Shown in pieces: positions 1,594-25,043 of a stretch of 64,000 bases of DNA. Numbering within the stretch: position 1 is the first letter of the stretch; each line of letters starts with the position of its first letter. Under the pieces are notes generated by a model. That model had not been told where the DNA came from, ran no database searches, and saw only the letters and a list, made by a program, of their open reading frames with translations. A program made the translations under genes and the position numbers. Where the stretch lies: assembly GCA_009859145.1 (NCBI GenBank), contig VRVR01000045.1:96049-160048 (forward strand), in the 5' to 3' direction. Origin of the DNA: Andalucia godoyi And28. Its lineage: Eukaryota; Protista; Jakobida.

Positions 1594-3138
1594 ATGTCGG
1601 AAACTGCGGCTGCAGTGCGTCAGCGGCGCCAATCTGTTGATTTTTTGATCAATTCCAACTTGGATGGCCCTCTTCATCCGGGCCCTACGAACTTGTTGCC
1701 TCATCTTTCCATTTCGACCACTCCGACATCTCACTATGCGCCTGCAGAGTCTCCCCGGAACGTCCGCGCTTCCCCCATTGTGGACATTCAAGGTCCGCGC
1801 TCCATTCATGTTCAGAACGTCCACCGGACGAGTCTTCCGGGAGTCCCGATGACTCTGACCAGTGGATATGTTCATCCATCTCCCCCAGTAACGTCTCATC
1901 CGATGCACCTTCACGGAGTGCGCTCGTCACCTTCTATGGGGTTTCCCAACAATTCGTACGGTATGAATCTTATGGTTACGGAAGACCAGTATCCTGGGAT
2001 GGCGTACCGCAGATCATCTGCGCCTGCTGATGTTTCCAACCTGAACATGCCTGGCTTTGCGAATTATCAATACTCGCATGGAAGCCCCTTGCAGCATCTT
2101 GTGGTTCATTCTCAGGGACCGCAAATCCCGCCTCCCAGCTATATGCCTGTTGTGTCGCCCCACGCGCGCTACTCGACCGGCCCTGTCACACAGTACGTGC
2201 CTGTATCCTCGAACGACCCGTCTTTTGGCAATAACGGTGTTGGTACGGGGACGCCGTTTATGTCGAGAAAGCGCGATTCAGTGACGTCGTCTCTTGGGAA
2301 TTTGAATATGGCTGAGTTTCCTTCTGGTGCTCCTGTCATTCTTCCACCACCGACTGCTCCGTCGACGGTCGCGAATGTCTCCTCTCCCGTTGCAAGCAAG
2401 GAGGTGCCGGTGAACCCGGATGGCAAACGTCGTCGGTCGGTCCCGTCGATTCCTTTGCAGTTTACCTCTCATCACATTGTTGTGCAGTCAGACGCCCAGG
2501 GGACAAGTCAGAATCAAGTGACGGACATCATCAGTGCCAAACTGAGTTCCGCTGCTCCTTTGCATCATGATCTTTATCCGGCAGATGCGAATCACCAAGT
2601 TGTGATGTCACAATCGCAATTGGCTGTGGAATTCGGTCTTATATCCAACGAGAAGAAGCTTCAACAGTTTCGTTACCGCGATTTCAAGCGCGCGGTGATG
2701 GACAGAGCGTCCGAACAGCATCGTGCGTTCATCGGACTGCATCCTGAGCACAACTTATTTACTTCACGATTACCCCACAAGATGTCGAAGAGACATTTTG
2801 CTTATCGTATCGCTTTGGTCATTTTCCACAGCATTCTAGCGTCCGGTGCGGTGCCTTCTTGTTGGAAGAGGTTGAAAAAGAGCGTCTTTTACGGAAACTT
2901 GCCTGAATTTGCCAACGAAATTCTCCCTGAAGTTGCTCTTCTCGCGTACTCCAGAATGCATTATGAGGGAATGACTCTCGCTTCAGCCATTTCGTATGCG
3001 CAGTCGCAACCTGTGCGCCCCCAACTCTCCAGCGTTCTTGAAACGAGTCCTTATGTATCCTCTGATTCCGAAAATGACAATCAAGGCGATGCTGACCAAG
3101 AGGATGATGAAGAAGAGGAGCCAGTGTCTAGTTCTTAG
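1594..3138 (+). CDS. Pro/Ser/His-rich protein with an unrecognised C-terminal basic domain (shared with 22920-25043) and an acidic tail; putative transcription regulator
   Basis: Long ORF, first ATG at 1594, TAG at 3136-3138. Low-complexity N-terminus, then LAVEFG...FRYRDFKR...RLPHKMSKRHFAYR...WK. Confidence 0.8.
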   Translation: MSETAAAVRQRRQSVDFLINSNLDGPLHPGPTNLLPHLSISTTPTSHYAPAESPRNVRASPIVDIQGPRSIHVQNVHRTSLPGVPMTLTSGYVHPSPPVTSHPMHLHGVRSSPSMGFPNNSYGMNLMVTEDQYPGMAYRRSSAPADVSNLNMPGFANYQYSHGSPLQHLVVHSQGPQIPPPSYMPVVSPHARYSTGPVTQYVPVSSNDPSFGNNGVGTGTPFMSRKRDSVTSSLGNLNMAEFPSGAPVILPPPTAPSTVANVSSPVASKEVPVNPDGKRRRSVPSIPLQFTSHHIVVQSDAQGTSQNQVTDIISAKLSSAAPLHHDLYPADANHQVVMSQSQLAVEFGLISNEKKLQQFRYRDFKRAVMDRASEQHRAFIGLHPEHNLFTSRLPHKMSKRHFAYRIALVIFHSILASGAVPSCWKRLKKSVFYGNLPEFANEILPEVALLAYSRMHYEGMTLASAISYAQSQPVRPQLSSVLETSPYVSSDSENDNQGDADQEDDEEEEPVSSS

Positions 3139-3669: not shown

Positions 3670-5787
3670 ATGCGGTATTTTTTAGTTCTGCAGCTTTGCT
3701 TGTCCGGGGTCCTGTTCCTCGCTCATGGACTGAGTCCCCTTCGACCTCCTGCAGTGCCGCTCGTTGTCTCTGATCCTTTCGTTTCCATCTGGTCGACGAC
3801 TGACAATTTGTATGACAGCTGGCCGCAGCATTGGAGTGGCGCCACTACCGCGCTTACTGGACTGATTCGGATTGACGGCAGCCCGTTTCGGTTCATGGGA
3901 CCAGATGATGGGATCCTTCCAAATGCGACAATGCAGCAAACGAATGTTTCAGTGTTCCCGACTCGCACGGTGTATGAATTCCAGCGGAATGGTGTTGGGC
4001 TGACAGTCACGTTCAATACACCATCCATTATCAAGGGAAAATCTCTCGGTGACGACGCTGACATGTTGTCTCGAGGAGTGACCTATGTGGACTTTGAGAC
4101 AAAAACGCTTGACGGCGCACCGCACTCGGTGTCTTTGTATTTTGATATGACGTCTGAATTGGTTGTCAATGATGTTTCGACTCCGGTGGTTTGGAATCGC
4201 GTGGCATCATCTACTGTCTGCGGATTCACCAGCTTGAGAATGGGATCTGAGAAACAGCCTGTTCTTGACCAGGCCGGCGATGCCGTCCGAATTTCTTGGG
4301 GCTATGTATACTTGAGCACCACAAATGCTTCTGACGTAAGCTCTGTGTTTTCTGGTTCGGTGCTGTCTCGATCTGCTTTCGGACGCGATGGCAGCCTTCC
4401 TAAGGTGGACGACAATCGAATGCCACGTGCGTGTAGTGACAATTGGCCTGTAATGGCGTTGGTTTTCGGAAACATGGATGTGTCTGCCACTGTTTCACAG
4501 CAACGATGGATTATGCTAAACGTGGACGACCAGTTTTCCGTCAAGTACTTTGGACAGTTTTTGCCACCCTTCTGGAAATACTTGTTTGGAAATGTGGAAC
4601 GATTGATTTGCACTTCGATATCTGAACATGATCAGTTGCAGGTGCTTTCGAAGTCGTTTGATCTTTCGTTGCTTTCGAACTTGGAGAGCACTGGGGGCGC
4701 CTCGTATGCCACTCTCGGCGGCCTGACCTATCGGCAAGTGACAGGTGCAACAAAGCTTACATTCGACGCGGACTCGGGAAGAATCCGGTTTTTTATGAAG
4801 GAGATTTCTTCTGATGGTGATATCCAGACGGTCGATGTCATATATCCTGCATCACCATTCTTTTTGTATCTCAATCCCCAACTCCTAACTCTCCAGTTGC
4901 TTCCTATCTTTGAGTATGCGCTGAATATGACGTCGGACCCGTATCCTCTGGTTTGGGCTCCGCACCATCTTGGCACGTATCCGATTTGTGATATTCTCCC
5001 TTCGCAGCAAGAAAACATGCCTGTGGAGGAGACTGCGAATATGATTCTGATGTTGGCTGCCATCGCCCAGAAGGATTCGTATTCTGCGATGATGAGCATG
5101 CTACCTGAGGGCTCGTGGGGCATGATCGAACAGTGGGCACAGTATCTGTGGGAGAACACCCTCGATACCGAAAACCAACTTTGCACAGACGACTTTGAGG
5201 GCCCTTCAGCGCATAACGCAAATTTGGCTGCGAAAGGTATTGTTGCCATGGGTGCGTTTGCGTATCTGGCACATTTACGTGGCGATGACGTGCAGTCTCT
5301 GAAGTTTGTGAATATGGCACGTAATTACTCATCATTTTGGGAGAAGTATGCACTCGATTCGTCGTCTTCTGGACCGGCGCACTACAAGCTGCAGTATGAC
5401 AAACCAAATTCCTGGTCTTTGAAGTACAACCTCGCTTGGGATCTGGTCTTGGGCACCGCTATCTTCCGCCCAGAAGTGGTTTCCGCTGAACTGGACTATT
5501 ATTTCTCTCAACACACAACTCACTATGGGCTTCCTCTGGATGTCCGGTCTGATTATGCCAAGTTTGACTGGTGTTCCTGGGTAGCAGCTATGTCTCCCGA
5601 TCCAACAAAGTTCTCGAGTGTGATGGATTCGTTGCTGGCATATGCAAACGAGACGCCTTCCCGGGTACCCCTTTCGGACTGGTATTTTGCTCACACGTCG
5701 GTGTCTGTAGGATTCCGCTCTCGATCAGTTGTGGGAGGTTTATATCTGAAACAACTTGTCTCATCTGCTGTGGCCAATAATCGGTAA
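3670..5787 (+). CDS. Secreted GtaA/'glutaminase A'-like protein (DUF4965/DUF1793-type family)
   Basis: Signal peptide MRYFLVLQLCLSGVLFLAHG, then RPPAVPLVVSDPFVSIWS, KEISSDG...TVDVIYP, HHLGTYP, MPVEETANM, QLCTDDFEG, NLAAKGI, SLKYNL and YGLPLD, motifs typical of the GtaA family. Confidence 0.85.
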   Translation: MRYFLVLQLCLSGVLFLAHGLSPLRPPAVPLVVSDPFVSIWSTTDNLYDSWPQHWSGATTALTGLIRIDGSPFRFMGPDDGILPNATMQQTNVSVFPTRTVYEFQRNGVGLTVTFNTPSIIKGKSLGDDADMLSRGVTYVDFETKTLDGAPHSVSLYFDMTSELVVNDVSTPVVWNRVASSTVCGFTSLRMGSEKQPVLDQAGDAVRISWGYVYLSTTNASDVSSVFSGSVLSRSAFGRDGSLPKVDDNRMPRACSDNWPVMALVFGNMDVSATVSQQRWIMLNVDDQFSVKYFGQFLPPFWKYLFGNVERLICTSISEHDQLQVLSKSFDLSLLSNLESTGGASYATLGGLTYRQVTGATKLTFDADSGRIRFFMKEISSDGDIQTVDVIYPASPFFLYLNPQLLTLQLLPIFEYALNMTSDPYPLVWAPHHLGTYPICDILPSQQENMPVEETANMILMLAAIAQKDSYSAMMSMLPEGSWGMIEQWAQYLWENTLDTENQLCTDDFEGPSAHNANLAAKGIVAMGAFAYLAHLRGDDVQSLKFVNMARNYSSFWEKYALDSSSSGPAHYKLQYDKPNSWSLKYNLAWDLVLGTAIFRPEVVSAELDYYFSQHTTHYGLPLDVRSDYAKFDWCSWVAAMSPDPTKFSSVMDSLLAYANETPSRVPLSDWYFAHTSVSVGFRSRSVVGGLYLKQLVSSAVANNR

Positions 5788-8082: not shown

Positions 8083-11000
8083 TTACGAAAATTCTCCTTC
8101 ATAGATCTGTCCGTTTGCATATCTCATGCGGCCCCACTTTCGCTTGCCATGAGCAAACCGTCCTTCAAAGACATCTCCGCTCGCGTATGTTTGCCTTCCA
8201 TTACCGTCTCGCTGACCGTCCACGAAAGTCCCTTCATATACACTGTCGACCTGCGCGTCTTCGTGTCCAATCAATTCGCGGAGTGACTCGTTGTTGTGGC
8301 CAGGAATTCGGACGCCGAGTTGATACAGCCGCTCGAGGAAGGGCGACCGAGGCCATCGCCCAACTTTCAGGGTTCCATGGCCATTGTAGAGATTCTTCAA
8401 AAATGAACCAGTGAAGCATTCTCCCTTCGTGGCGTCCCAGAGCCATCCTTCACCTTGACGTTCTCCCGCGATCATAGGACCATAGTAAACTATTTTGGAG
8501 GACCACCAAAGCCCAGATCCATGAGGACGGAAAGCATCGTCGACTGGGCCATCCCAAACAACGTCTAGCATCAAAGGCTGAGGAGGCGCCATGGGTGCCA
8601 AAGAATCGTGGCGCGATGATCCTGGGGACGCTGGAGAGGGCTGTTCCAGCGCCACCGCAAACGACAAACGACCTTGTGTTGGCACGTCGGAAATCCATTC
8701 TCCAGAATATTGCTTCAAAATAACAGTAGCATCTGCAGCAGCAGCAGAAGAGGAAAACGACATGGTTCCGGATCCATGACGCAAGCCTGTGAAAAACTCT
8801 CCATTATACGATGACCCATCGCTCCACTGAACTGTCCCCGGACCATGGTACTTGTCCTCTCGGTAGTAACCAGCATGCAGAAGAATAGAATCGATCGCTC
8901 GAGGTGCCGTTCCCACAGTCACAGACACATGACCTGATCTGCCGAACGAGGAGGATCGAGAATAAGTCGTCGTTCCTTGTCCATGACGCAAACATTCCTT
9001 GAATTCCCCCTTGTAAGCAGCGTGCAGACATCGCAGTTCTCCGTGACCATCAATAAGACCATTTCGCATGCGGCCACAGAACGAAGCAGAAATGCCGCCA
9101 AACGAAGAATCATCACAATCCCACTCAAGAACAAACGTACGATGCAGCTGGCCTGCGACCGAGGCAGATCCCAGTGTAAAGGAAGAATTCGAAGCGAGCC
9201 TGACGTGCAGCGAAATATCAGGCTGCGTTCCATCTTCCAGCGATGCAGAAGACATGAACTGCGCAGACAAAAGAGAGGTACGAGGGATAGAACCGGGCCA
9301 CTCCACCACCAACGGCGTCTGAGGAACTCCTCCGGACCATTTTCCGGAAACAGTAATTCCAGATCGCTGAAACACCATGACACCATTTCCTTCACGTTCA
9401 TCTTCCAAAAATCCACCGTCGTATTCGATGATGTCGGGAGCCCCGGCCGACGAGCCAGTCGCACTTGTCACTCCCTCTAAAGAAGTCGCGACAATGACTT
9501 GCTTTCCGATGCCACTCTTTAACCCGTCAACAACAGATCCGACATATGTATCCTGGGTAGCGTACCGAATACTTGCTTTGGGACACGTCATTTGATCTCG
9601 CACAAATTCGCCTTCGTAAACATCTCCGGTCTCGTATGAAAACACACCCTTTCCCCATCTAAAACCCTCCTTAAATTCACCATCATACGTTCCAACGCCA
9701 GGAACGCAGAGCCTGCCATGGCCATTTCCTTTCCCGCGTTCGAAGGAACCGGTATACACAAGCTGTTTTGGTGGGCCGGTTTCGCCCGGCACAGGTTGCC
9801 GGTACTCCCCTCGACCCCATGCCACGCCATCGCGAAACTGGCCCTCATATTCTGACCCAGCAGGAGATATGTAGAAGATACGACCATAGCCGCACATCAT
9901 GTCCCCTGAAAAATCACCGCGATAAACATTGCCCAGCGGATCGGTGTACACCGCGCCTGACCCTTCTCTGACGTCGGCAACGAAAGGACCGTCATACAAT
10001 GCACCAGATGCATACTGGAGCACTCCGTGGCCATGCTTTCGTCCAAACAGGAACGCTCCTCGATACACATTCCCGACATCGTCAATAAGCTCCCCTTCTC
10101 CAGAAGGCAAATCATTCACCCACGGTCCAACGAAGGACACGGCAGCAGACAGGGAGATCCGCCCGAGGCCATATCTCGCACCTGCAGAAAAATCGCCTTG
10201 GTACACATCGCCGTTAGCATACTTGCGAACTCCTTTTCCATTCATTTCGCCTTTGGAGAACTCGCCTTGATATGAACCGCCACCTCGTTCGTCTGAGTGG
10301 TTCCAGAGAGTGCTCGCAGAGAATTCGGGGGGAAATTCACCAGATGCTGACGGCGCTTTCACCTCTAGATAATGAGCAGAGAAAGACAACATGCCTTGAC
10401 CATGCATATACTGATTGTCAAAGCCGCCTTCGTACGAATGTCCTCGTTCGATGAAAGAGATTTTTCCTTTCCCAGAACGCACACCTCGGGCATACGTCCC
10501 TTCGTAGATGGACACAAGACACTGATCGGAGACAGAAGCAAGAGATTGCGTCTCCGGTTGGCAGTAGTATCGAGTCTTGCACAGGCCATCGGGAAGACCG
10601 GAATCGAAGGCACCTCGTATCTCCTCCCAGAAACTCACATTCGGTTGATGCGCGTCTCGATTCGAGAAATACAACAGAATATCCACAACGGTAGGTGAAT
10701 AGACAGCTGCCAGCGATTGCCGACAAATTCCGCGACCGTGAGGACATCCGTTGTACCAAGAGCCCTCGTAATACTGAGAATCAAGTCGGAGAATGCCAAA
10801 CCCGCTGGGTAAATTTCTCTCACATTCGCCTTTGAACACCCAAGAACTGAGGGATATCCAGCCAAAAGAAGAAAGCTTTGAATTGGTCTCGTCGACTTGC
10901 AACTTTGTCCCAAAGATACCGTCCACTCTCTGCAGTTTCATGCAAGATGCAATCTGGGATCTTGTGACATTCACATCGACTGCAGTGTTGACCTCCACTT

Positions 11001-13770
11001 GCGTTTTTGAAAAACCCAAGGCATCTGCTGATCCGCGGCAAACAAGGCCAGACCGGAAGCTGACGTAAACAGCCTCGCCGCCAAAAGAAAAATAGGGAGA
11101 CGAATGGTCTGACTGCGCAACAATGATTCCAGAAGCAATCGAAGGGATGTCCACAGGGTTTGCAGGGATGCATGGAAGAAGGACAACTATAATAGGAACG
11201 GACGAGGAAGGACGATCATGGCAATATTCGCACATCACAGCCATGTAATGCGCTTCTGCACACGGCTCGTCGCATTGGATAATCGACATTCCAAATCCTG
11301 CGCGAGCATCTCCAACATACGTGCCCTCAAAAATCACTTCCGTCCACCCCTGTGACCATGCGGCAAGTGATTGTTGAAGATTGTGAAAAGCTTCTGTAAA
11401 GCAGTTCATGGAGGAAACCTTTGCATTTGAAGCCACCATTGCAGAAACCACGGTGTGTTGCGGGACTTCGAAAGCATTTAACTTCAACGAGCACACACCC
11501 TGTCGCTTATCAGACCACCAAGATCCCTTGATGGTAATTCCACGCCTTGCTGCATCACCAGCATCGTTGGGTCCCGCAACAGGATAGTGGTACTTCTCTG
11601 TTCCAGCACCATGGCGTGCCATCCCACGGAAACCACCCTCATACGTTCTTCGAGTCTTTGGAGCCACAGCAACAACGGATTCTCCAGGAACGACCCAGTC
11701 AACATCCACACTTTCGATTGCCAGTTCATCTTCTTCTTGAATAGACTCTGCAAAAATAGGAGACAAGAACCGTGCAATACCCAGACGGCATTGCATCAAC
11801 AACTTGGGGATTCTGCCTTCTAAAACACGGACCAAGCGTGCCTTTCCGACGGGTACTCCTCGGACCCAACGGCCCTCATACCGATCTCCTCTCTTATTCG
11901 TGAGCATTCCCGACCCCTCGCGCACATTTCCGGAAAATGACCCTCGGAATTCACCGTCATACTCTTCCTCATCGCCATTCTGGCCATGAGTGCTGACAAC
12001 ATTGTCTTTGCTGCTCGACACTGCATGCTTGTTAGCAGAAGAAGAAGAAGAAGAAGAAGAAGAAGAAAATGATGATGATGATGACAGTTGGGACGAAGAT
12101 TCAGTCGTAGGCAGTGATGTGAGAGAAACGCCAGCATCAAATGCAGAAACCAGCTTCTCCACTCCCGAAAAATATCTTTCTCCTTGAACCCACGTCCCAG
12201 AATAACTTGATCCGTCACTGTACACCATCGTTCCTTGTCCGTGAGGCTTATCCCCTGCCCAGTCTCCCTCATACTTTCGCTTTCGCTTCTCCGTAGACTT
12301 GCCAGAAATCGTGGAATCTGAATGCAAGATGAAAGACATCGTGCCTCGACCATGTCGAATGTCGTCTCGCCACTCCCCTTCATACACACTACCATCTGCC
12401 CATTCCATCCTTCCTTGCCCATGTCTCCGGTTTGCGCTAAACTGTCCGACGTACAAGCCCCCTGACGATACGGTACTCGAGACGTCTTCTCCTTCATTCA
12501 ACGGCCGTGATACACCATATCTCAGCGTACCTTTGCCCTGCCGCAAGTTGCTGCGAAACTCTCCTTCGAAAACATCGCCCGTTCGTGCTGAAAAGTAAAT
12601 GCCGACACCATGCATTTGGTCTTCAAACCACTCGCCATCGTATCTGTCCGTCGAAATACCGTCTGTCAGCTTGCGAATTGGGAGGTCTTCGACAGAATTA
12701 ACAAGTGGTGACGAAGACCCGACGTTGTTGTTGTTTCTTCTTCCGTCAAGTTGCGCATCATCTGAAAACCAGTATTTTGCGAAGCGAGTCTCTAGCTGTT
12801 GGGCATTCAGCGAAGTCCACAGCAATACACTCTCCGGCTTCTTCGCAGGAAACTGTACTTGTGTATTTTCTTCAAATTCCAAAACGGAAGGAGTTGAGCG
12901 AGATGTGAACCAGCATATTCCCTTGCCATGTTTTCGTCCGTTTTTCCAATCTCCAATGAACATGCATCCATCTTCTGCATACCGATACAGCCCGAGGCCT
13001 TCTCGAGTATCATTTTTCCAGCCCCCAACGTACACATCACCGCAGGCATACTCTGCTCGGGCCACTCCGTTAATCGAAGAGTGCTTCCATTGTCCACAAA
13101 CGAGAGTCGAGCCAATGGCAGAGGAATGCTGGAAAGACACGGAGGCATGATTTCTGTTCATAAAAGAAATTAGCTTATCGTGTGCAGCGGATTCATCATG
13201 TGACGTAGAGCCGAGTGCACTGTACATGGCAGAAAGAAAGGGCTCCAAAGGAAGCATCATAATCCACGAAGCCACCGGACGCCGATCGTGCCGTTCGTCA
13301 GCTTTCCAGAACCCACCATAAAACGAACCGTCGGGAAGGACCTCCACTCCTTGGCCGTGCTTTTGATCATTGCACCACTCTCCGGCATACGAAAGAGTCG
13401 TTTTTGGAACAGGATCGCGAGTAAGGGAGTATATTTGCTGCTGTGTGAATACTCCTCGCCCATGCTTCTTGTCATCGACCCAGTTGCCTTCATACAACAC
13501 ACGAAGATGGACTGCTGAACCGTGCCTTGTGTTTGCAACGGCATCTTTCGGTTGAGACGGATCCAGCAGTCGGGATAAGGCATACGTTCCGTGTCCGTTC
13601 CGCAAGTCTCGAGCCCAAAAGCCGTCATACACAGACTTGTCCAGCGCAAATACATGGCGACCATTGCCCCATCTCATACCGCGAACAAATTCTCCTTTAT
13701 ACACATCTCCAGAAGGATATGTTTTAGACCCCTTTCCATGCTCTGACCCGTCGTCTTGGAAATCAGACAT
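8083..13770 (-). CDS. Large MORN-repeat protein (1895 aa)
   Basis: Dozens of YxGxW/F...xxHGxG repeats in several clusters. ATG at 13770. The frame ends abruptly at YEGEFS*. Confidence 0.9.
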   Translation of the reverse strand: MSDFQDDGSEHGKGSKTYPSGDVYKGEFVRGMRWGNGRHVFALDKSVYDGFWARDLRNGHGTYALSRLLDPSQPKDAVANTRHGSAVHLRVLYEGNWVDDKKHGRGVFTQQQIYSLTRDPVPKTTLSYAGEWCNDQKHGQGVEVLPDGSFYGGFWKADERHDRRPVASWIMMLPLEPFLSAMYSALGSTSHDESAAHDKLISFMNRNHASVSFQHSSAIGSTLVCGQWKHSSINGVARAEYACGDVYVGGWKNDTREGLGLYRYAEDGCMFIGDWKNGRKHGKGICWFTSRSTPSVLEFEENTQVQFPAKKPESVLLWTSLNAQQLETRFAKYWFSDDAQLDGRRNNNNVGSSSPLVNSVEDLPIRKLTDGISTDRYDGEWFEDQMHGVGIYFSARTGDVFEGEFRSNLRQGKGTLRYGVSRPLNEGEDVSSTVSSGGLYVGQFSANRRHGQGRMEWADGSVYEGEWRDDIRHGRGTMSFILHSDSTISGKSTEKRKRKYEGDWAGDKPHGQGTMVYSDGSSYSGTWVQGERYFSGVEKLVSAFDAGVSLTSLPTTESSSQLSSSSSFSSSSSSSSSSANKHAVSSSKDNVVSTHGQNGDEEEYDGEFRGSFSGNVREGSGMLTNKRGDRYEGRWVRGVPVGKARLVRVLEGRIPKLLMQCRLGIARFLSPIFAESIQEEDELAIESVDVDWVVPGESVVAVAPKTRRTYEGGFRGMARHGAGTEKYHYPVAGPNDAGDAARRGITIKGSWWSDKRQGVCSLKLNAFEVPQHTVVSAMVASNAKVSSMNCFTEAFHNLQQSLAAWSQGWTEVIFEGTYVGDARAGFGMSIIQCDEPCAEAHYMAVMCEYCHDRPSSSVPIIVVLLPCIPANPVDIPSIASGIIVAQSDHSSPYFSFGGEAVYVSFRSGLVCRGSADALGFSKTQVEVNTAVDVNVTRSQIASCMKLQRVDGIFGTKLQVDETNSKLSSFGWISLSSWVFKGECERNLPSGFGILRLDSQYYEGSWYNGCPHGRGICRQSLAAVYSPTVVDILLYFSNRDAHQPNVSFWEEIRGAFDSGLPDGLCKTRYYCQPETQSLASVSDQCLVSIYEGTYARGVRSGKGKISFIERGHSYEGGFDNQYMHGQGMLSFSAHYLEVKAPSASGEFPPEFSASTLWNHSDERGGGSYQGEFSKGEMNGKGVRKYANGDVYQGDFSAGARYGLGRISLSAAVSFVGPWVNDLPSGEGELIDDVGNVYRGAFLFGRKHGHGVLQYASGALYDGPFVADVREGSGAVYTDPLGNVYRGDFSGDMMCGYGRIFYISPAGSEYEGQFRDGVAWGRGEYRQPVPGETGPPKQLVYTGSFERGKGNGHGRLCVPGVGTYDGEFKEGFRWGKGVFSYETGDVYEGEFVRDQMTCPKASIRYATQDTYVGSVVDGLKSGIGKQVIVATSLEGVTSATGSSAGAPDIIEYDGGFLEDEREGNGVMVFQRSGITVSGKWSGGVPQTPLVVEWPGSIPRTSLLSAQFMSSASLEDGTQPDISLHVRLASNSSFTLGSASVAGQLHRTFVLEWDCDDSSFGGISASFCGRMRNGLIDGHGELRCLHAAYKGEFKECLRHGQGTTTYSRSSSFGRSGHVSVTVGTAPRAIDSILLHAGYYREDKYHGPGTVQWSDGSSYNGEFFTGLRHGSGTMSFSSSAAAADATVILKQYSGEWISDVPTQGRLSFAVALEQPSPASPGSSRHDSLAPMAPPQPLMLDVVWDGPVDDAFRPHGSGLWWSSKIVYYGPMIAGERQGEGWLWDATKGECFTGSFLKNLYNGHGTLKVGRWPRSPFLERLYQLGVRIPGHNNESLRELIGHEDAQVDSVYEGTFVDGQRDGNGRQTYASGDVFEGRFAHGKRKWGRMRYANGQIYEGEFS

Positions 13771-16977: not shown

Positions 16978-19900
16978 TTAGGATGCGGTTCTTCTCGTCG
17001 AAGGGCCAGATCGACCGTTGTTGAAAGAATCTTGAACGGCTGGAGAGCGAGGGCTCGTGCTCAGAATGGCGGACCCCGACACCGGTCCGCCGAAGGAAAA
17101 CTTAGGAGCTGTATCCAACGACAACCCTCCATCTGACTTTGTAGCCTTCATCAACAAAATGCACCTCTGGAATCCCTGGCGTGAGGCGTCGTCAATGGGG
17201 GTGCTGCCCCAGCGATCCCGACTGTTAGGATCTGCTCCCGCATGCATCAATATCCGAACAATTTCCAAATGCCCTGAGCTTGCTGCTAGGTGGAGTGCGG
17301 TCCTGCCATCGTAATCGCCCATGTTGATGTCCACCTTCCTCGCAAGCAAGCGCCGAACTTCTGACACATCGTCCTTCGCAGCGGCCGTGCAGACAGCGTA
17401 GATGTCGCGATGCAGGGAAGTCAATCTCCACAAACACGGATTCTTCTTGAGAGTGAACCCCTGTGTGTTTGATTCAAATGGATGGAAAGCATACATGTCC
17501 GCCAAGCGACGCGCAAAATCAATGCCACGGACGGAAATACGCGACGCGTTCAACGGAGGACTGTACAGCGCAATTCCCATGACGCCCGGCACAATCAGCA
17601 TCACGGAGCCCGATGCACCCGCAACAGCCGGAAGCCCCACCAAAAACGCCCACTCGCCGGAATAATCGTACATTCCACAAGAACTCATAATAGACAAGCA
17701 TGACCGGACCGTGGATGACGAAAAGATCCGCTCGCCCGTCAGTGGACATACACCGCCGGACGCCAATGTCGCCGCAATCAAAGACATACTTGCGCAGTTC
17801 CACTCGAGAGAGCACATCATCAAATAAAACTGCAAAACTTCCTCCAAATTCGTACCCTTTGGGAGTGCATTCTTTTCTCGCATGTGATATGTCAAACAGC
17901 GATTGCGGTCGGAATTTTGTTCCTCACTGAGAAACACAGCCAAATTGAAACCGACAAGATCATGGTCATCGCCGGAGTCTGGATTTCCAACCGCGCGGCG
18001 GTACAGTTTCATCATGTAGTCGTAGCGATCCGGCAAGGCGTCATCTGGACAGACAAGCGACAGTGCGGCCATCGCTCCGGCATTTGTAAACGGGTTGTGA
18101 GGTAGGTCCCGGTGATTCAAGAGAAGATGGTTCCCCACAGAACCCGACGGCTCGCGACCCATTCGTGAATGCACAACCTTTTCACCGCGCTGTTCCAGAG
18201 CAGCGCAGTACGACAGCGCATTCGAACAATGCTGGGCAGTAAAAGGAGCCAGCGCAGATCCAAAGTATGCTCGCTGGCCATCAACAGTGCACACCGCACA
18301 CCCAAACAAATCAGAAGGCACCGCAGCAAGTTCAGGAATGTAAGAAGCATTCGCCGCATCACCAATCGACACCTCCGATGATTCGCAGAATACAGAAGCT
18401 AAATCTTCAGAAAGAGAGGGGAAATCGGGCACCATTAAAGACCCATCCAATGTTCTGCGAACTAAGCTGGCCGTCGAGGGAGAACACGCTCCCATGGCTT
18501 TGTAAAAATCCGATTCCGTAAATGACTCTGGCAACGAAAACTTGCCACGCAGCCGAGGATCTCTGTCGACATCAATTCCGCTTACAGTGAACCGCTCACA
18601 AACTTTCTTAAAACTTCCATGGCCACTTTTGTCGGTTTCAAACGACGAAAACAACAAATCGAGGCCCATGCTCACCGCTTGATCATCTTCGTCATCGGGG
18701 TCCTGGTCAACAGCTGATTCGTGTGCAGTGTCATCATGGTTCTCGGCGCTCTCAAGAGAAGGACCGTTGTTGGGACACGCTGCTACTCCCTGCGATGCAA
18801 TCATTGGTGATTCGTTATTCTTTGGGTTCTCCAGGATCGACTGTTGTGCTTCTGCTTTTTTCAGAAGATCTGCGATCACTAGGTGTCCATGCCGCTCTGC
18901 GTCATTGCGCGGTGTGTTTTGGAAACGGTCGCGAGGTGACAGAGACACGCCTTTGTCAATCAGATACTCCGCAATTGATCGATGTCCGTTGGAAGCAGCG
19001 AGATGCAGCGCAGTCCTCCCGTCATAGTCTTCGTACTCCAACGAGCATCCTCGAGCAGCGAGCTGTTTCACGCGATGCAGATCCCCAACTGCAGCAGCAA
19101 ACAGCAGGTTCACCAAATCATCCTCAACGGACGCAGACTGCGCGAGTCTGGGATTAATCTTCTCAACCGACTGATCGCCACTGTTGTCAAACGTATGGAA
19201 CTGATACCGCTGTGACATCAGTCGACAGAATTCCACACCACGAACAGAGTTTCCAAATTGGTCCAGCCGCGGCGACCATACGCAAAATCCGGCAACATTC
19301 GGAACGACAACCATGAGAGAACCGGCAACACCTGATTTCGATGGGAGTCCGACTGAAAACGCAAACTCTCCCGAGTAGTCGTACATCCCACAAGAGGTCA
19401 TGAGGGACATTGCATCACGAACCGTGGACGACGAGAAAACACAGCGTCCCGTGACCGGACAAACACCTCCGTTTGCAAGAGTGGCGGCTACCAGCGACAT
19501 TTGCTCCGCCGTTGTTTCGATAGAGCACATCATGAAGTACATGTTCAGCGTCTCCACGAGATTTGTGCCAGCGGGAAATTTCCCGGCTTCTTTCATCATA
19601 TACCCCAACGTGAAATTCCGATCTGCGGTCGATGCCTCGCTGAGATACGTCGCATTATCAAAGCCGATACGGGAGTCTCCGGCTAGGCAGCTCCAAGTGG
19701 AAAGCACATGGGTGATGCGATCCGGCAATCTGCTTTGGTTGCGAATGAGCGACGTTGTCATAATCGCACCTGAATTGATGTACGGATTGTGCGGCAGATT
19801 GTCCTTGTTCAGCACCAGCTCATTGAAGTTTCGACCAGATGGTTCTCGACCAACGTACTTGTGAACCTCGGATTGCCCCAGCTCTTCCAGCGCGATGCAG

Positions 19901-20742
19901 TATGAAATTACTTTGGAACACGATTGTGCGCAAAACGGAACTCGTGCATCGCCATGGCTGAAGCGCTGGCCGTCAATCGAGCACACGGCGAGACCCATTT
20001 GGTCGGGATTCACGCGCGCCAGCTGGGGAATGTACCGCGCCACGTCCCCTTCATTGCGAGCGGCGACCTTCTCGAATATTGAGACCAGCTCGTCACAGAA
20101 CGACGACCACTCTGGAATCGCCAGGTTGCGATTCATTGCACGCTCAATCAAGAACGACCGGTTCAGCAGAGCCACAAACTCTTCAAGCTGCAGCGGCGCC
20201 GAAAGATTTCCAGCATACTGCGCAAATATGCCAGAAATTCGCGAGTCTCGAAAAGCATCGATTCCCATCTCGGCCAGCAGCTCCACGACGTGTCGAACGA
20301 GAACTTTTGGCTCTGAAACCGGGATGAAATTCGCGGAAGACAATAGAGACAGACTCGACAGCGACGCCGAATGAATCATTCTCCCTTCAGAATGATGTTC
20401 AGATCCAGAATCCCTTCTACTAGTGTCCTCCAGGCCACCGACGGATGCACCGGAAGCAGCCGTAGTCGTCGAAGCATCCGCGTGCGATGACGCGATGCTT
20501 TCATACAACGCCTCCATTTGCGCCAAGTGGAATGCAGCCAAATCCGCGCTTTTATCGATTCGGGACGAAATGGAGTGCGAGCGCGATCGGGTCGAGCTTG
20601 TTGTGACATCTCGAAGAAACGGACTCGCGGAATGTGGAGCACTCGGGACGTGGGAGGGCGGAACTGGCGGCGAGTCTCGAGACTCCGCAAGGCCCATTCC
20701 TTTTACACCATGGTCGACAGACTCTTTTCTCTTTCCAGTCAT
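16978..20742 (-). CDS. GLS: Tandem double kidney-type glutaminase: (EF-hand-like + glutaminase + ankyrin) x2
   Basis: First in-frame ATG at 20742. Copy 1 has QSCSK, GREPSG, PHNPYINSGA, GMYDYSG, KSGVAG and ankyrin DYDGRTALH. Copy 2 repeats the whole layout with QHCSN. Confidence 0.9.
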   Translation of the reverse strand: MTGKRKESVDHGVKGMGLAESRDSPPVPPSHVPSAPHSASPFLRDVTTSSTRSRSHSISSRIDKSADLAAFHLAQMEALYESIASSHADASTTTAASGASVGGLEDTSRRDSGSEHHSEGRMIHSASLSSLSLLSSANFIPVSEPKVLVRHVVELLAEMGIDAFRDSRISGIFAQYAGNLSAPLQLEEFVALLNRSFLIERAMNRNLAIPEWSSFCDELVSIFEKVAARNEGDVARYIPQLARVNPDQMGLAVCSIDGQRFSHGDARVPFCAQSCSKVISYCIALEELGQSEVHKYVGREPSGRNFNELVLNKDNLPHNPYINSGAIMTTSLIRNQSRLPDRITHVLSTWSCLAGDSRIGFDNATYLSEASTADRNFTLGYMMKEAGKFPAGTNLVETLNMYFMMCSIETTAEQMSLVAATLANGGVCPVTGRCVFSSSTVRDAMSLMTSCGMYDYSGEFAFSVGLPSKSGVAGSLMVVVPNVAGFCVWSPRLDQFGNSVRGVEFCRLMSQRYQFHTFDNSGDQSVEKINPRLAQSASVEDDLVNLLFAAAVGDLHRVKQLAARGCSLEYEDYDGRTALHLAASNGHRSIAEYLIDKGVSLSPRDRFQNTPRNDAERHGHLVIADLLKKAEAQQSILENPKNNESPMIASQGVAACPNNGPSLESAENHDDTAHESAVDQDPDDEDDQAVSMGLDLLFSSFETDKSGHGSFKKVCERFTVSGIDVDRDPRLRGKFSLPESFTESDFYKAMGACSPSTASLVRRTLDGSLMVPDFPSLSEDLASVFCESSEVSIGDAANASYIPELAAVPSDLFGCAVCTVDGQRAYFGSALAPFTAQHCSNALSYCAALEQRGEKVVHSRMGREPSGSVGNHLLLNHRDLPHNPFTNAGAMAALSLVCPDDALPDRYDYMMKLYRRAVGNPDSGDDHDLVGFNLAVFLSEEQNSDRNRCLTYHMREKNALPKGTNLEEVLQFYLMMCSLEWNCASMSLIAATLASGGVCPLTGERIFSSSTVRSCLSIMSSCGMYDYSGEWAFLVGLPAVAGASGSVMLIVPGVMGIALYSPPLNASRISVRGIDFARRLADMYAFHPFESNTQGFTLKKNPCLWRLTSLHRDIYAVCTAAAKDDVSEVRRLLARKVDINMGDYDGRTALHLAASSGHLEIVRILMHAGADPNSRDRWGSTPIDDASRQGFQRCILLMKATKSDGGLSLDTAPKFSFGGPVSGSAILSTSPRSPAVQDSFNNGRSGPSTRRTAS

Positions 20743-20966
20743 TGTCGGAAATGCTGAGAACGCAAAAAAATATAATATTACTAATAATAAAAATATAATC
20801 CCAGAGTGAAGACCTGCCTGCAGAACAAACCAAATGAAACCCTCCAAATCCCAAATGTCTGCTGGATGGGTGTGAATATCATCAGATGGTATGGCTGAGT
20901 TGACAGCCGTCGACAATGCTGTTGAATGAAGGCCGACGTTTCCCTCCCTGCAGATTGCTACTACCG

Positions 20967-21000
20967 GTTGCTGTCGTTGTTGTTGTTGTTGTTGCTGTCG

Positions 21001-21066
<66 letters not shown>
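20967..21066. repeat. (GTT/CAA)n microsatellite
   Basis: About 30 interrupted triplets upstream of the glutaminase ATG. Confidence 0.9.
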
Positions 21067-21067
<1 letters not shown>

Positions 21068-21867
21068 CGCGGCGGCGTGGGTGTGCAGGTCGAGGCTCTA
21101 TGAGACACTGTCGAATATTGACAACCGATTCCTTGTAATCGATGGTGGGCGCTGATGCAGATTGTAAAAGTCACTTTACGCCAATAGCCTGTTTTTGAGA
21201 CGCGGCGGCATGCGAGACATTTTATCTTTTTTTTTTTTTCGGAGACGTTTCGGTTGGAGGGTAAACACTTGAGTGAATGAACCGACTCGGAGAGTTAGAG
21301 AGGTCAGAGGGCTTCGGCTATGTGGATATAGTACTTTTTTATCCAAGTATATCTTCATTTACGCCAAGTAATTTCGTTGGAAATTTTTGAACTCTCTTTT
21401 TCTGATCCGCATGCGAAGTACACTGCTCCGTAGTCCGTGCAAATCGGCACGCCACCAGAAACAACAGCGTTCTCAAGAGAAATGCTGCACCGAGCGCGCC
21501 ACTCCAGTTTCGGTCATCCTTGACGGACGGACGGATGGATACGCTGGACACCGAAGCAGCAACACCTTGCTCCCGCTCCGGTTTCTGGTCGACATTTCCT
21601 CCAAAGACCACACGACTTGGGCGTGCACTCCTTCCTGCTTTTTGCTCTGCAGTCTTTGCTGGAGTCGGCGGTAATTCCGGCCTCGGCATCAAGACCAGCG
21701 GAGAGCAGCCGAGAGCCCAGAATTCTGGGGCAGCCGACCGGACCCGTCGGGAAGTCGCAGCAGAGACCGTTGCTGACACCCACCAGGAGGCCAGAATAGC
21801 AGCAAACGGCTTCTTCTTTGCAGGTTCGACGGCGTCTGTCAATGACTCAATGACGATGATAGCGATA

Positions 21868-21971
<104 letters not shown>

Positions 21972-22919
21972 AGTGGCGCAAGAGAAAATTGTTCCAGCTT
22001 GAGGGTGGTGGATTGTGCGTTTGTCCCAGTCAGCAAAGCGCGCAGCGCGGGGCAAAGCGCCATCCTCAAAAAAGAAAGTTTGAGCGCTGCCGACGTTTCA
22101 ACTTGCCGGGAAGCTCCGAGGGTCTGCTCAGACGACGAAGTTTCCGATGGCTGCTTGCCGGTCCATAGATTGAGGGAGCCTTTTACGGAACTTCTGCGCT
22201 CGCACAAATATAAAAAAGATTCAAAAACACGGCTGGCACATCCGAAGTCCCGATGGCCGAACAGATTTGCCGGAAATCCACGGGGGCTTGGCGCACACTC
22301 GCGGTCTGGTAGGATGGCTGGACAAAGCTGATTTGGGTTGACGATCCATCAGAAGAGGCAGTGGCTGAAAAAGGAAATGTCACAGCAGGCATGCATGGCG
22401 GATCGGGATGCGTGTCGCCGGGGCCTTGACCGCTGACGTATTGCGAGCCGCATCTGCTCGCATTATGTCCGCATTTGGGCAAGCGCGTGCGGCCAGTTTC
22501 CTCTCGGGCGCAGTCCACCACGGTTTATCCCTCATGCAAGCACATGCGGCTCGTTTCCGTACATTCCGTCGAACATTCATCCGGCTTTCCCCTCCCAAAA
22601 CTCCGTCTTGCGCAACACCTTGTATCCTGCTGATTTGCGGTATTCCTGAGCGTCTTTCATTCGTTCCCCATTCGCGTCCTCCAGCTTCTTCTCAATTCTT
22701 CTCCGTCCTCCCCCTTTTGTTGCTTTTGCTTCTTCTTCTTCTTCTTCTTCTTCTTCTTCTTCTCTTTGTTTTGTGCCCTGCTTTCCCTTTTCTGTGTGTG
22801 CGTGCATCATTGTTCTTTTATTAATTACGTTTTTATCTCAAAAAACAAGAATCGCTTCCAGAGTGTCTTTTTGAGGCCCCCCCACCCTTGTCATATTGTT
22901 TTGTTTTTCGGCGGCAGGC

Positions 22920-25043
22920 ATGAATCATCGAGTTTCTGCGTTTTCTCGTCCATATCCGTCGAACGCGTCAGCCCATCCGGCTCCGTTTCCAGGGTCCTCG
23001 ACGGCGCCACGAGAGTTTCACGGCCACCCGCCTTCCCAGTTCCAGCATTCGCATGCGCCGCCTGTGCTTGGATACCCCATGCGCCCGCCGACGCTCCTCG
23101 GCGATACCCGCGTGCCTCCACACCATCAGCAATACTATTCGCAGCAGCTTTCATCGCAGCCTTGCTGCCCTTCCTTCCAGTACCAACCACATCCGCCGCC
23201 TCAGCATCTCCTGTACGACAGCCCACCTGCTCCCCAACAGCCTTACTCTCCCCAGCACCATCATCCCCAATACTACAGCTATCAAGCACCTCCCCCGCCT
23301 CACCACCAGCAGGTCCAGCCGCCCCAACAGCACTATCCATATCCAACGTACCCCGCCGTGTACCATCCGCTTCGCAGGCCGTACGCGGGTTTCGAAAGCG
23401 AGAAGTATTCCTACTCTCAACACCCCCATCAATCTCAGCACGCGCCTCCATCCCAGCACGCTTCGTCACCAAGGAAGAGAAGACCTCGCGCATCGTCAGC
23501 AGATGGCTTTATTGCGCTTCCCACAAATCTTGTTTCCCATTTTTCTCCAAACACTTCATTATCGTTATCCTCCTCCTCCTCCTCCTCCTCTTCTTCTTCT
23601 TCTTCCTCCTCCTCCTCTTGTTCGTCTTCATCTTCTTGTTCGTCATGCTCGTACTCGACATGCTCGTCGAACTCCTCAAGTGGTGCCATATCAGCGACAA
23701 CGACGGCGCACTGCGCTCCTTCCGCATCATCTTCCATCAGTTCGCTCCATGGAACTCAAAAATTCATTTCTGCTGTGCCTTCGATTTCGGCGTCCATCAG
23801 CCATTCGTTCTATGCACCCGGAGCACGGCTCGTGGGCTCAAAGAGAGACCGCGAGGGCTCGATTTCATCGCTAAATTCTGGATCATCGTCAAGAAGGGCG
23901 TTTGGCACTGCAGGCGACGATGAGGATCAGGGCGCAGAAGAGAACGACCGCCGTCCACGAAATGACGATGATGACCGCGATGGTGACGATGACGAGGATG
24001 GTATCGAGGGTGATGATGATAAGAGATCCTTTCGAATTGTGCATGAGGTTCCGAGTGGATCCGAGACCAGAGATCGAAGAGATTTTACGATGTGGATTGG
24101 AGAGGAGCCGCCCTTGTGGCTTGCGGTTTGCATCTCCGCACATGCGCATTGCACAGCTTTGCTTCGTTCTCTGCAGGACCTACCAGAAGAGGATTTGAAG
24201 GGGAAAGGGTTTGATCGAGTGAAAAAGGCCGCGGTGCAAACTGTGCCCTTTCCTCTCGCTGATGCCTTGCTCTCGCTCTTTGCTACTGAGATTGCAGATC
24301 CTTCTTCCTCCTCTCCTCCTCCTCCGTCTTTGTCGTCTTCTACTTCGCCTGCTGCTCCTTCTGCTGGAAGAGTGATTGATTCCTATCTGGATCGAGAGGC
24401 GCAGCAACTGGTCTCGCAGATCAGAGCACTCGTTGTTGCTTCTTCCAAGTGGTCTGCGAATGAACAGGACGCGAAAGACAGGAACGAAGACGAGGAGAAA
24501 AAAGAGTGGAGCAAACGGAACAGCATGGTAGAGAGTGCAGATCCGTGCAAGAAACCGGGCTTCGCCTCGTGGACAATTATGTCTCCAGAATTGCGAAGAT
24601 CGTTGGTGCAAGTGGACTTGGTTGTGGAATTTGGAGTGTCGTCTTCTGTGATCGATGCGTCACTGTTCAGATTCCGCGTGTTTCGTCGCAAGATTCTGTC
24701 CCGAATCGCACCACACGAACTTGAAAAGAGAATGGACGGGGTGTTCGCAAGTGCAGTGGTGGATGCGCTGTCGGAGTGCAGCGGCATGGCCGCGGTTGCC
24801 TCCAAAGATTCCAGTCTTCTTAAGAACGAGGGACTCCTGTGCAGACCGTTGCTTCATCGCTTGCCAAGAAGGATGTCAAGGAGGGAATTTGCTTATCGGT
24901 TGCTGCTGCTCCAGCAGTACCATGCTCGGTTGCTCGACGTTTCACTGCCGTTCTGGAAGTCTGTGCGCATCGCGAGACTCGCTGCAGTATCCACAGTCTC
25001 CGCCGCACCGCTTCTATCTGATATTTTGGGTCTTTCTACATAG
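22920..25043 (+). CDS. Pro/Gln/His/Ser-rich protein with the unrecognised C-terminal basic domain shared with 1594-3138
   Basis: First ATG at 22920. PQH-rich N-terminus, basic PRKRRPR, poly-S, acidic tract, then LVVEFG...FRFRVFRR...RLPRRMSRREFAYR...WK. Confidence 0.8.
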   Translation: MNHRVSAFSRPYPSNASAHPAPFPGSSTAPREFHGHPPSQFQHSHAPPVLGYPMRPPTLLGDTRVPPHHQQYYSQQLSSQPCCPSFQYQPHPPPQHLLYDSPPAPQQPYSPQHHHPQYYSYQAPPPPHHQQVQPPQQHYPYPTYPAVYHPLRRPYAGFESEKYSYSQHPHQSQHAPPSQHASSPRKRRPRASSADGFIALPTNLVSHFSPNTSLSLSSSSSSSSSSSSSSSSSCSSSSSCSSCSYSTCSSNSSSGAISATTTAHCAPSASSSISSLHGTQKFISAVPSISASISHSFYAPGARLVGSKRDREGSISSLNSGSSSRRAFGTAGDDEDQGAEENDRRPRNDDDDRDGDDDEDGIEGDDDKRSFRIVHEVPSGSETRDRRDFTMWIGEEPPLWLAVCISAHAHCTALLRSLQDLPEEDLKGKGFDRVKKAAVQTVPFPLADALLSLFATEIADPSSSSPPPPSLSSSTSPAAPSAGRVIDSYLDREAQQLVSQIRALVVASSKWSANEQDAKDRNEDEEKKEWSKRNSMVESADPCKKPGFASWTIMSPELRRSLVQVDLVVEFGVSSSVIDASLFRFRVFRRKILSRIAPHELEKRMDGVFASAVVDALSECSGMAAVASKDSSLLKNEGLLCRPLLHRLPRRMSRREFAYRLLLLQQYHARLLDVSLPFWKSVRIARLAAVSTVSAAPLLSDILGLST

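Follow-up and report, generated by a model that had tools for sequence, protein, structure and literature searches.

A family of uncharacterised Discoba proteins with a basic, mostly helical domain, and its candidate role in transcription

The Pfam domains used for counting regulators of transcription derive from animals, plants and fungi, and jakobids and heteroloboseans are deep-branching eukaryotes. These two groups retain gene-by-gene transcriptional control, and a preprint on Discoba, in which transcription factors (TFs) were counted via 65 Pfam domains, states that lineage-specific factors would be missed (bioRxiv 10.64898/2026.07.29.740908). A stretch of 64,000 nucleotides from the jakobid Andalucia godoyi And28 (contig VRVR01000045.1 of assembly GCA_009859145.1, positions 96,049 to 160,048 of the forward strand; hereafter the window, to which all positions refer) raises the question of what a factor of this kind could look like. 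There are two single-exon genes of interest on its + strand, gene A (1594..3138, 514 amino acids, P0001) and gene B (22920..25043, 707 amino acids), both delimited by open reading frame (ORF) and ATG context. Their products share a domain that an earlier note, made from the DNA letters alone, did not recognise and assigned to a possible lineage-specific regulator family. Are the two proteins truly related, do they have relatives elsewhere, and what might they do? The searches and the structure prediction described here provide good support for a new protein family, without a match in Pfam, NCBIfam, PDB or BFVD. That its members are lineage-specific TFs with their own DNA-binding domain is a tentative reading, to which slightly less than an even chance is given.

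The likeness had been described as two ungapped blocks, with 12 of 29 residues identical in block 1 and 11 of 17 in block 2, followed by a Trp-Lys pair (W-K) at the same spacing, in proteins that are otherwise unalignable. Counting by hand from the translations gave the same block identities, and W-K follows block 2 at an equal offset in the translations of A and B. Block 1 of gene A begins at 2620, as claimed, and W-K ends at 2868. The first ATG of gene A (1594) follows a pyrimidine-rich tract and its stop is at 3138; the partner gene had been placed correctly at 22920-25043, where a long ORF on the + strand runs from ATG to stop. Comparison of the whole proteins by BLASTP gave one significant alignment (A residues 354-444 with B residues 570-691 in ORF numbering, 27% identity, composition-adjusted E=7e-7) and otherwise noise, in agreement with the statement that they do not align elsewhere. 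When each domain was used in tblastn against the window, the other copy was the sole match (E 2e-5 and 2e-6), and A and B were the only matches of the family hidden Markov model (HMM) among all 961 six-frame ORFs of the window. A leave-out profile, built from relatives only (i.e., without A, B and the B-like ANDGO_07245), recovered A with E=7e-47 and B with E=3e-13. Thus, the BLASTP, tblastn, family and leave-out profile scores establish that the similarity of A and B is homology, not chance. A chance or compositional artefact might be suspected in two low-complexity proteins, given that both are compositionally biased and that only about 27% identity was seen initially; it has practically no chance of being the explanation, as the shared region is not low-complexity and the adjusted BLASTP score, the leave-out scores, 40 relatives and a confident common fold refute it. 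Chance similarity of A and B is excluded.

The relatives came from a profile search. A profile of the two window domains only was run exhaustively, with HMMER, against 1.84 billion representative proteins, and it brought out a family of 40 relatives at E<1e-3, of which 13 were found at E<1e-10. Word-index searches with the whole of A, the A domain or a 34-sequence profile returned just A, ANDGO_07241 and one fragment. The protein library holds a 514-residue sequence that is identical to the product of gene A (P0001). The relatives align across about 135-140 residues, and in this family-wide alignment the two blocks prove to be the best-conserved stretches of a single, larger domain. The range of 2620-2880 given for gene A therefore fits the two blocks but falls short of the full domain, which occupies about 2593-3009; similarly, "Arg/aromatic helical domain" was a fair wording, but both blocks are parts of one compact domain rather than two modules. 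The domain of A (2593..3009, + strand; 139 amino acids, P0001 residues 334-472) was delimited by family alignments (A2, MAFFT), AlphaFold2, the leave-out HMM and column conservation. Its landmarks on the + strand are block 1 (2620-2706), block 2 (2767-2817) and W-K (2863-2868). In most members of the family, the domain sits at or near the C-terminus.

The working definition of the family and the column numbers used here are taken from A2, an alignment of 34 sequences. The consensus of block 1 is Q-x-x-L-A-x-x-F-G-L, a variable loop, and [FW]-R-x-R-D-x-[KR]-R-x-L; between the blocks, mid-domain, there is S-x-x-H-x-x-F-I. Block 2 has the consensus H-x-x-L-x-x-R-L-P-H-[KR]-M-[ST]-x-R-x-F-A-x-R-L-x-L-x-x-F-H, then G-x-x-P-x-F-W, and the C-terminal part is characterised by L-P, P-E-V-A and G-x-s-x-x-x-A-[IV]-x-x-A. 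Protein A, an A-type, full-length member, carries every block 1 residue, the full block 2 and core motif, and the C-terminal helix pattern that completes the fold of about 139 residues. Nearly all members have a basic domain (pI 9-10.9), with a net charge of up to +13. Eleven columns are conserved as basic (R27, R29, K/R32, R33, K/R38, R59, K/R63, R67, R72, R/K86 and K/R93), most densely where helix 28-38 begins and near R-L-P-H-K. Judging by helical periodicity, F31 and L35 of helix 28-38 would form a hydrophobic stripe, with R29, K32 and R33 on the opposite face. Where the loop is shortest, block 1 has the sequence LAQYFGLPGRFRDYKRSLF (L-A-Q-Y-F-G-L-P-G-R-F-R-D-Y-K-R-S-L-F), i.e., a helix, a G-L-P-G turn and a basic helix, which is a minimal helix-turn-helix (HTH) pattern. 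Three His residues and one Asp residue are also conserved: H79 in 33/34 sequences, H53 in 27/34, H62 in 23/34 and D30 in 30/34 (in gene A at 2827-2829, 2749-2751, 2776-2778 and 2680-2682, respectively). These four residues could make a structural hydrogen-bond network or a metal site.

What fold does this sequence adopt? With A2 as the input alignment, AlphaFold2 gave a predicted local distance difference test score (pLDDT) of 97.3 and a predicted template modelling score (pTM) of 0.91, and five of five models were above 96; with an alignment of A and B alone, the pLDDT was 45. According to the model, the family-defining domain is one compact, mostly alpha-helical unit of about 135-140 residues. 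It comprises eleven helices (H7-13, H20-25, H28-38, H41-49, H51-57, H66-84, H89-93, H96-102, H105-110, H112-125 and H129-138) and two strands of three residues each (4-6 and 63-65), and each strand precedes the helix that opens a conserved block. The predicted secondary structure of block 1 (H7-13, a loop with G15-L16, and H28-38 with R29, K32 and R33) is compatible with an HTH.

The statement of the earlier note that the domain is unrecognised held in every database searched, i.e., no family was found in Pfam, NCBIfam or PDB sequences, and no fold in PDB or BFVD. Foldseek, which had been named as a means of finding remote folds, was run on the model with pLDDT 97 and found nothing in PDB (best E=2, TM<=0.25) or in BFVD (best E=2.1, TM<=0.31). 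Pfam had no match to A and B. On the 34 domains, there were eleven unrelated single-member Pfam matches, one of them to Sigma70_r4 (E=0.1), and none at E<=1 to a MADF, Myb or AP2 model. On ten full-length relatives, Pfam found no further domain, except for phosphoglucomutase in P0026 (a predicted JGI/Logan protein of 416 amino acids from outside the window), where the C-terminal two-thirds of the domain are fused upstream of phosphoglucomutase domain I; most likely, gene calling of the prokaryotic style has run two neighbouring genes together on a metagenome contig from a eukaryote. NCBIfam gave nothing consistent. Searching PDB by sequence profile yielded only the AraC-family chain 3mn2_A (E=0.31 over profile positions 63-113), the remainder being noise, and a profile of the N-terminal half gave only a spurious OmpA peptide match in PDB. 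An internal duplication was considered and rejected: both halves of the domain start alike, with "MS + helix", but hhalign of the N-terminal half against the C-terminal half gave a probability of 0.2%.

Could the domain nevertheless be a known HTH, of the AraC/XylS, MADF/Myb or sigma-70 region 4 type, that has diverged so extremely that it only appears to be a new fold? It would then still be DNA-binding. The AraC/XylS HTH (HTH_18/HTH_AraC; MarA, SoxS, Rob) is similar in size (about 100-130 amino acids) and is all-helical. Block 1, as L-A-x-x-F-G-L...F-R-x-R-D-F-K-R, mimics the AraC HTH pattern "i-A-x-x-x-G-F-x-s-x-x-x-F-x-R-x-F-K", and block 2, as M-S-x-R-x-F-A-x-R-L-x-L, mimics the AraC linker helix "s-p-x-x-Y-x-x-x-x-R-l-x-x-A"; however, the two likenesses fall in inconsistent registers, and AraC-family proteins belong to bacteria, while the present family has been seen in eukaryotes (Discoba) alone. 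When A2 was compared by hhalign with MarA, SoxS, Rob, AraC, RhaS and RhaR from E. coli K-12 (NC_000913), the probability was 1.4%, and in the one stretch that aligned, block 1 fell on the second HTH of MarA; this is a pattern resemblance, not homology. Membership of the AraC family was rejected on this probability, the E=0.31 of 3mn2_A, the lack of a Pfam match and the lack of any AraC-family chain among the Foldseek results. The sequence "W-R-Y-R-D-x-K-R" is also reminiscent of the MADF helix "W-x-x-L-R-D-x-Y-R-R". The MADF or Myb-SANT-like candidate was rejected, with no Pfam model at E<=1 in 34 members and no Myb or SANT structure via Foldseek, as was sigma-70 region 4, to which one of 34 members has its sub-threshold match. 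What speaks for a diverged HTH is that the only sub-threshold matches (3mn2_A and Sigma70_r4) are to HTH regulators, that hhalign puts block 1 on the second HTH of MarA, and the likeness to the MADF helix. This is outweighed by the hhalign probability itself, by the lack of any Pfam HTH, MADF or Myb model at E<=1 in 34 members other than the one Sigma70_r4, by the failure of Foldseek to return a MarA, Rob, Myb or sigma chain for so confident a model, by the lack of an internal repeat, and by the fact that the two weak matches cover different parts of the domain, and a diverged known HTH is considered very unlikely.

Which organisms have the family? Of the 40 relatives, 30 were looked up and eight of these carry an organism name, all of them Discoba (Jakobida and Heterolobosea); the remaining 22, without an organism name, are from assemblies of JGI/IMG, ENA or Logan. 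The named members are four paralogues of Andalucia godoyi (ANDGO_07241, 07245, 08500 and 01925), two proteins of Stygiella incarcerata, and one each of Pharyngomonas kirbyi and Percolomonas sp. WS. The proposal of a lineage-specific family therefore holds as regards the lineage, the named relatives all being Discoba. None of the eight named among the 30 looked up is from Euglenozoa, and pattern scans of prokaryotic genomes and JGI metagenome contigs (A3, P0002) yielded no confirmed relatives. These hypothetical proteins of Andalucia godoyi, Stygiella, Pharyngomonas and Percolomonas are true homologues that carry the domain, with only 31-57% identity to the window genes, which marks A and B as different paralogues or as coming from a different organism; none has been annotated or studied, and no account of the family was found in the literature. 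NCBI or UniRef was listed as a source for none of the 30 relatives that were looked up, which is probably why there is no Pfam model for the family.

In a neighbour-joining tree, the family splits into at least six subfamilies. Protein A groups with P0002 and P0003, beside the clade that contains ANDGO_07241 (31% identity to A), and the clade of B includes ANDGO_07245, P0025 and P0033. A separate clade is made up of the heterolobosean-type sequences ("W-R-Y-R-D-I-K-R ... F-H-F-I-L-R-D-G"), and a "M-T-H-R-E-L-A ... G-R-R-K-M-T-P" group holds ANDGO_01925 and a Stygiella protein. As the members from A. godoyi are spread over several subfamilies, the paralogy is older than the Andalucia lineage. 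On these alignments, A and B are anciently diverged paralogues from different subfamilies of a family that is so far seen in Discoba and in unassigned environmental assemblies. The locus tags of ANDGO_07241 (A-clade) and ANDGO_07245 (B-clade) are four apart, and A and B are four to five genes apart; this spacing hints at a conserved linkage of the A-type and B-type subfamilies.

Gene B encodes a divergent, short member, and its type differs from the A-type in several respects. The domain in B (24591..25040, + strand; 150 amino acids) was delimited by alignments and the HMM, with the leave-out score given above. In B and ANDGO_07245, the B-type counterpart among the named homologues, an insertion of about 31 residues follows the N-terminal half and precedes block 2. 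Asp30 is replaced by Val in B, ANDGO_07245 and P0033, and by Leu in P0025; the other block 1 residues are present in B. The core of B reads RLPRRMSRREFAYRLLLLQQYH...LPFW, with Gly changed to Val (one of two such rows in the alignment) and the F of F-H changed to Tyr. The HMM match of B covers profile positions 3-113 of 136, the last 25 or so residues being absent, and P0025 and P0033 likewise end about 25 residues early; that all three stop near profile position 113 shows the B-type to be a short variant. The ANDGO_07245 model diverges past block 2. This protein is the closest named relative of B, with 57% and 53% identity in two blocks. One of these lies outside the domain: a B-lineage block (PLWLAVCISAHAHC...VQTVPFPLADALLS; 24111..24275, + strand; B residues 398-452) has 53% identity to residues 15-69 of ANDGO_07245 and is common only to these two proteins. 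It abuts the domain in ANDGO_07245, and in B about 110 low-complexity residues lie between. With Val30, the insertion, the truncated C-terminus and the extra upstream block, B-type members would probably have a different binding or modulator role.

Outside the domain, the proteins are of low complexity. That such a region precedes a basic domain near the C-terminus had been noted, and the composition of A and B confirmed it: the N-terminal 333 residues of A have 13.8% Ser and 13.2% Pro, and the N-terminal 557 residues of B have 19% Ser, 11.7% Pro, 5.7% Gln and 5% His. The Ser/Pro-rich region of A (1654..2592, + strand) was delimited by composition and contains no Pfam domain. The poly-Ser run within gene B is encoded by a (TCC)n / 24-27-nucleotide repeat. 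Motifs resembling nuclear localisation signals (NLSs) are found on the + strand in A (SRKRDS, 2266-2274; GKRRRS, 2425-2436) and, by a regular-expression scan upstream of the domain, in B (RKRRPR, 23472..23489); most full-length members have at least one K-R-R-R or K-R-x-R cluster upstream of the domain, often followed by Ser. A ends in an acidic C-terminal tail, as read from the translation (SSDSENDNQGDADQEDDEEEEPVSSS; 3058..3135, + strand), P0003 has a similar acidic tract after the domain, and in B a long one precedes it. Near its N-terminus, A has the motif S-V-D-F-L-I-N (1633..1653, + strand; residues 14-20), which is preceded by basic residues (RQRRQ). In the relaxed form [DSTE]F[ILMV][ILM][NH] within the first 70 residues, it occurs in 7/46 family proteins (6 non-redundant) compared with 0.2% of shuffled sequences. 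Besides A, the carriers are P0002, P0015 (Pharyngomonas), P0031, P0035 and P0037, with both jakobid-type and heterolobosean-type proteins among them, and the motif takes the form [ST]-[IV]-D-F-[LM]-[IL]-N, or LTFILN / LSFILN. It may be a docking motif for a co-factor or a degron, and it is loosely reminiscent of the eh1 or EAR-type repression motifs.

How might such proteins work? Some lineage-specific TF families of eukaryotes, e.g. ApiAP2, combine a disordered region with a single small, basic domain that binds DNA. If the A/B family is of this kind, the proteins would be imported into the nucleus via their KRRR-type motifs, and the basic domain would attach to a nucleic acid, with double-stranded DNA as the most likely target. 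Block 1, in which the helix Q-x-x-L-A-x-x-F is followed by a G-L turn and the Arg-rich helix R-x-R-D-x-K-R, would act as the binding element together with the basic segment of block 2 (R-L-P-H-K-M-S / R-x-x-x-x-R). Co-factors would be recruited by the disordered region, rich in Ser, Pro, Gln and His, by the acidic tracts and, in some members, by the SxDFLxN motif. What points indirectly to DNA binding or a TF role is the basic pI, the eleven Lys/Arg columns, the HTH-like block 1, the NLS-like motifs, the acidic tracts and the lack of any other domain. The ApiAP2 family of Apicomplexa and the MADF/Myb-SANT-like TF families are similar to the present family in having a small basic domain with low-complexity sequence, NLS-like motifs and acidic tracts, and in being made up of ancient paralogous subfamilies within each genome that are restricted to one supergroup; their DNA binding has been demonstrated and their folds or Pfam models are recognisable, and neither is true of the present family. 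Several points count against the proposal. No homology to a known DNA-binding fold was demonstrated by hhalign, HMMER or Foldseek, and the likeness to an HTH is statistically unsupported (hhalign 1.4%, HMMER E 0.1-0.3, no HTH via Foldseek). The conserved basic residues are known as alignment columns, not as one surface, and would suit the binding of RNA, phospholipid or an acidic protein equally well. The NLS-like motifs are short, and low-complexity sequence commonly contains them; H53, H62, H79 and Asp30 could mark a metal or catalytic site, and the taxonomic range comes from one search with a two-sequence profile, in which eight were named among the 30 of 40 that were looked up.

What else could the domain be doing? 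It might be a protein-protein or chromatin-associated module that docks on an acidic partner (e.g. histones or a co-regulator complex), with the disordered region as a scaffold and without contact to nucleic acid. A compact helical domain without a match to an HTH fold would suit this, as would the dominance of the hydrophobic/aromatic core motif F-H...G-x-x-P-x-F-W in the conservation and, in some members, a short linear motif at the N-terminus, of a kind that is typically used for docking. Eleven basic positions in two short segments (R-x-R-D-x-K-R and R-L-P-H-K) exceed, however, what is typical of a protein interface, and the domain, as the sole folded part, must supply the targeting specificity; docking is thus regarded as unlikely. 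Binding of RNA, with the proteins acting as post-transcriptional regulators of, e.g., mRNA stability or translation, would agree with the basic pI, the Lys/Arg columns, the disorder and the lack of other domains as well as DNA binding does, and some lineages of Discoba lean heavily on control at the RNA level (bioRxiv 10.64898/2026.07.29.740908). Yet no named member is from Euglenozoa, the branch of Discoba most dependent on RNA-binding regulators, features such as NLS-like motifs and acidic tracts tend rather to mark nuclear proteins of DNA or chromatin, and there is no likeness to RNA-binding families in Pfam or PDB, so that a role in RNA binding is considered quite unlikely. Finally, the conservation of H79, H53, H62 and D30 might mean that the domain is a small module that binds a metal or catalyses a reaction with these His and Asp residues. 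However, H62 and H53 give way to other residues in whole subfamilies (the GRRKM group and the B-type), and the B-type has Val in place of D30; there are no Cys partners and no likeness to any enzyme family, and a disordered region with one small domain is unlike enzymes, which makes such a module highly improbable.

If the proteins of the A/B family are lineage-specific TFs, their fold would add to the eukaryotic repertoire. A disordered region joined to one small basic domain is a familiar design for a regulator, and the domain itself is without a detectable relative in Pfam, NCBIfam, PDB or BFVD. The family is a concrete candidate for the factors missed in Discoba, being multi-paralogous, kept across two classes of Discoba and confidently predicted in its fold. 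One possible but doubtful extension is that an undescribed DNA-binding fold defines a Discoba-specific superfamily of TFs, which would pre-date the split of jakobids and heteroloboseans, comprise at least six subfamilies and have been lost from, or never present in, Euglenozoa. Such a distribution would go hand in hand with the way in which gene-specific control of transcription has eroded in Euglenozoa. Should the domain bind DNA, it would be a new DNA-binding fold among eukaryotes and a handle on the transcriptional networks of organisms that are used for inferences about early eukaryotes, and its absence from Euglenozoa would be a marker for the loss of TF-based control. Should it not bind DNA, Pfam or InterPro would still gain a new domain family. 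It should be borne in mind that orphan families are common in under-sampled protists.

The remainder of the window is in keeping with the compact, intron-poor organisation reported for the genome of Andalucia godoyi (PMC7050145): it is itself compact and intron-poor, with genes ordered on mixed strands and a GC content of about 0.46-0.58. The other genes include those for the splicing factor Syf1, the WD40 protein Sof1, an RHD3/Sey1 GTPase, a MORN-repeat protein and two kinds of glutaminase. Three of them lie between A and B. A GtaA-type glutaminase A gene (3670-5787, + strand) encodes DUF4964, DUF5127 and six-hairpin domains, and its product has a hydrophobic N-terminus like that of a signal peptide. 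The MORN-repeat protein (8083-13770, - strand) is 1,894 amino acids long and has at least nine MORN stretches. The gene at 16978-21174 (- strand) encodes 1,397 amino acids, with two stretches of kidney-type Glutaminase and C-terminal ankyrin repeats; the two glutaminases are unrelated to each other. Long microsatellites, perfect or nearly so, are found at 20967-21067, 21863-21971, 22729-22763 and 23568-23629; in this order, they are (GTT)34, (CGATGA)18, (CTT)12 and the (TCC)n / 24-27-nucleotide repeat already mentioned for gene B. Those in intergenic DNA give rise to spurious long ORFs on both strands, e.g. at 21339-22055 and 21520-22002.

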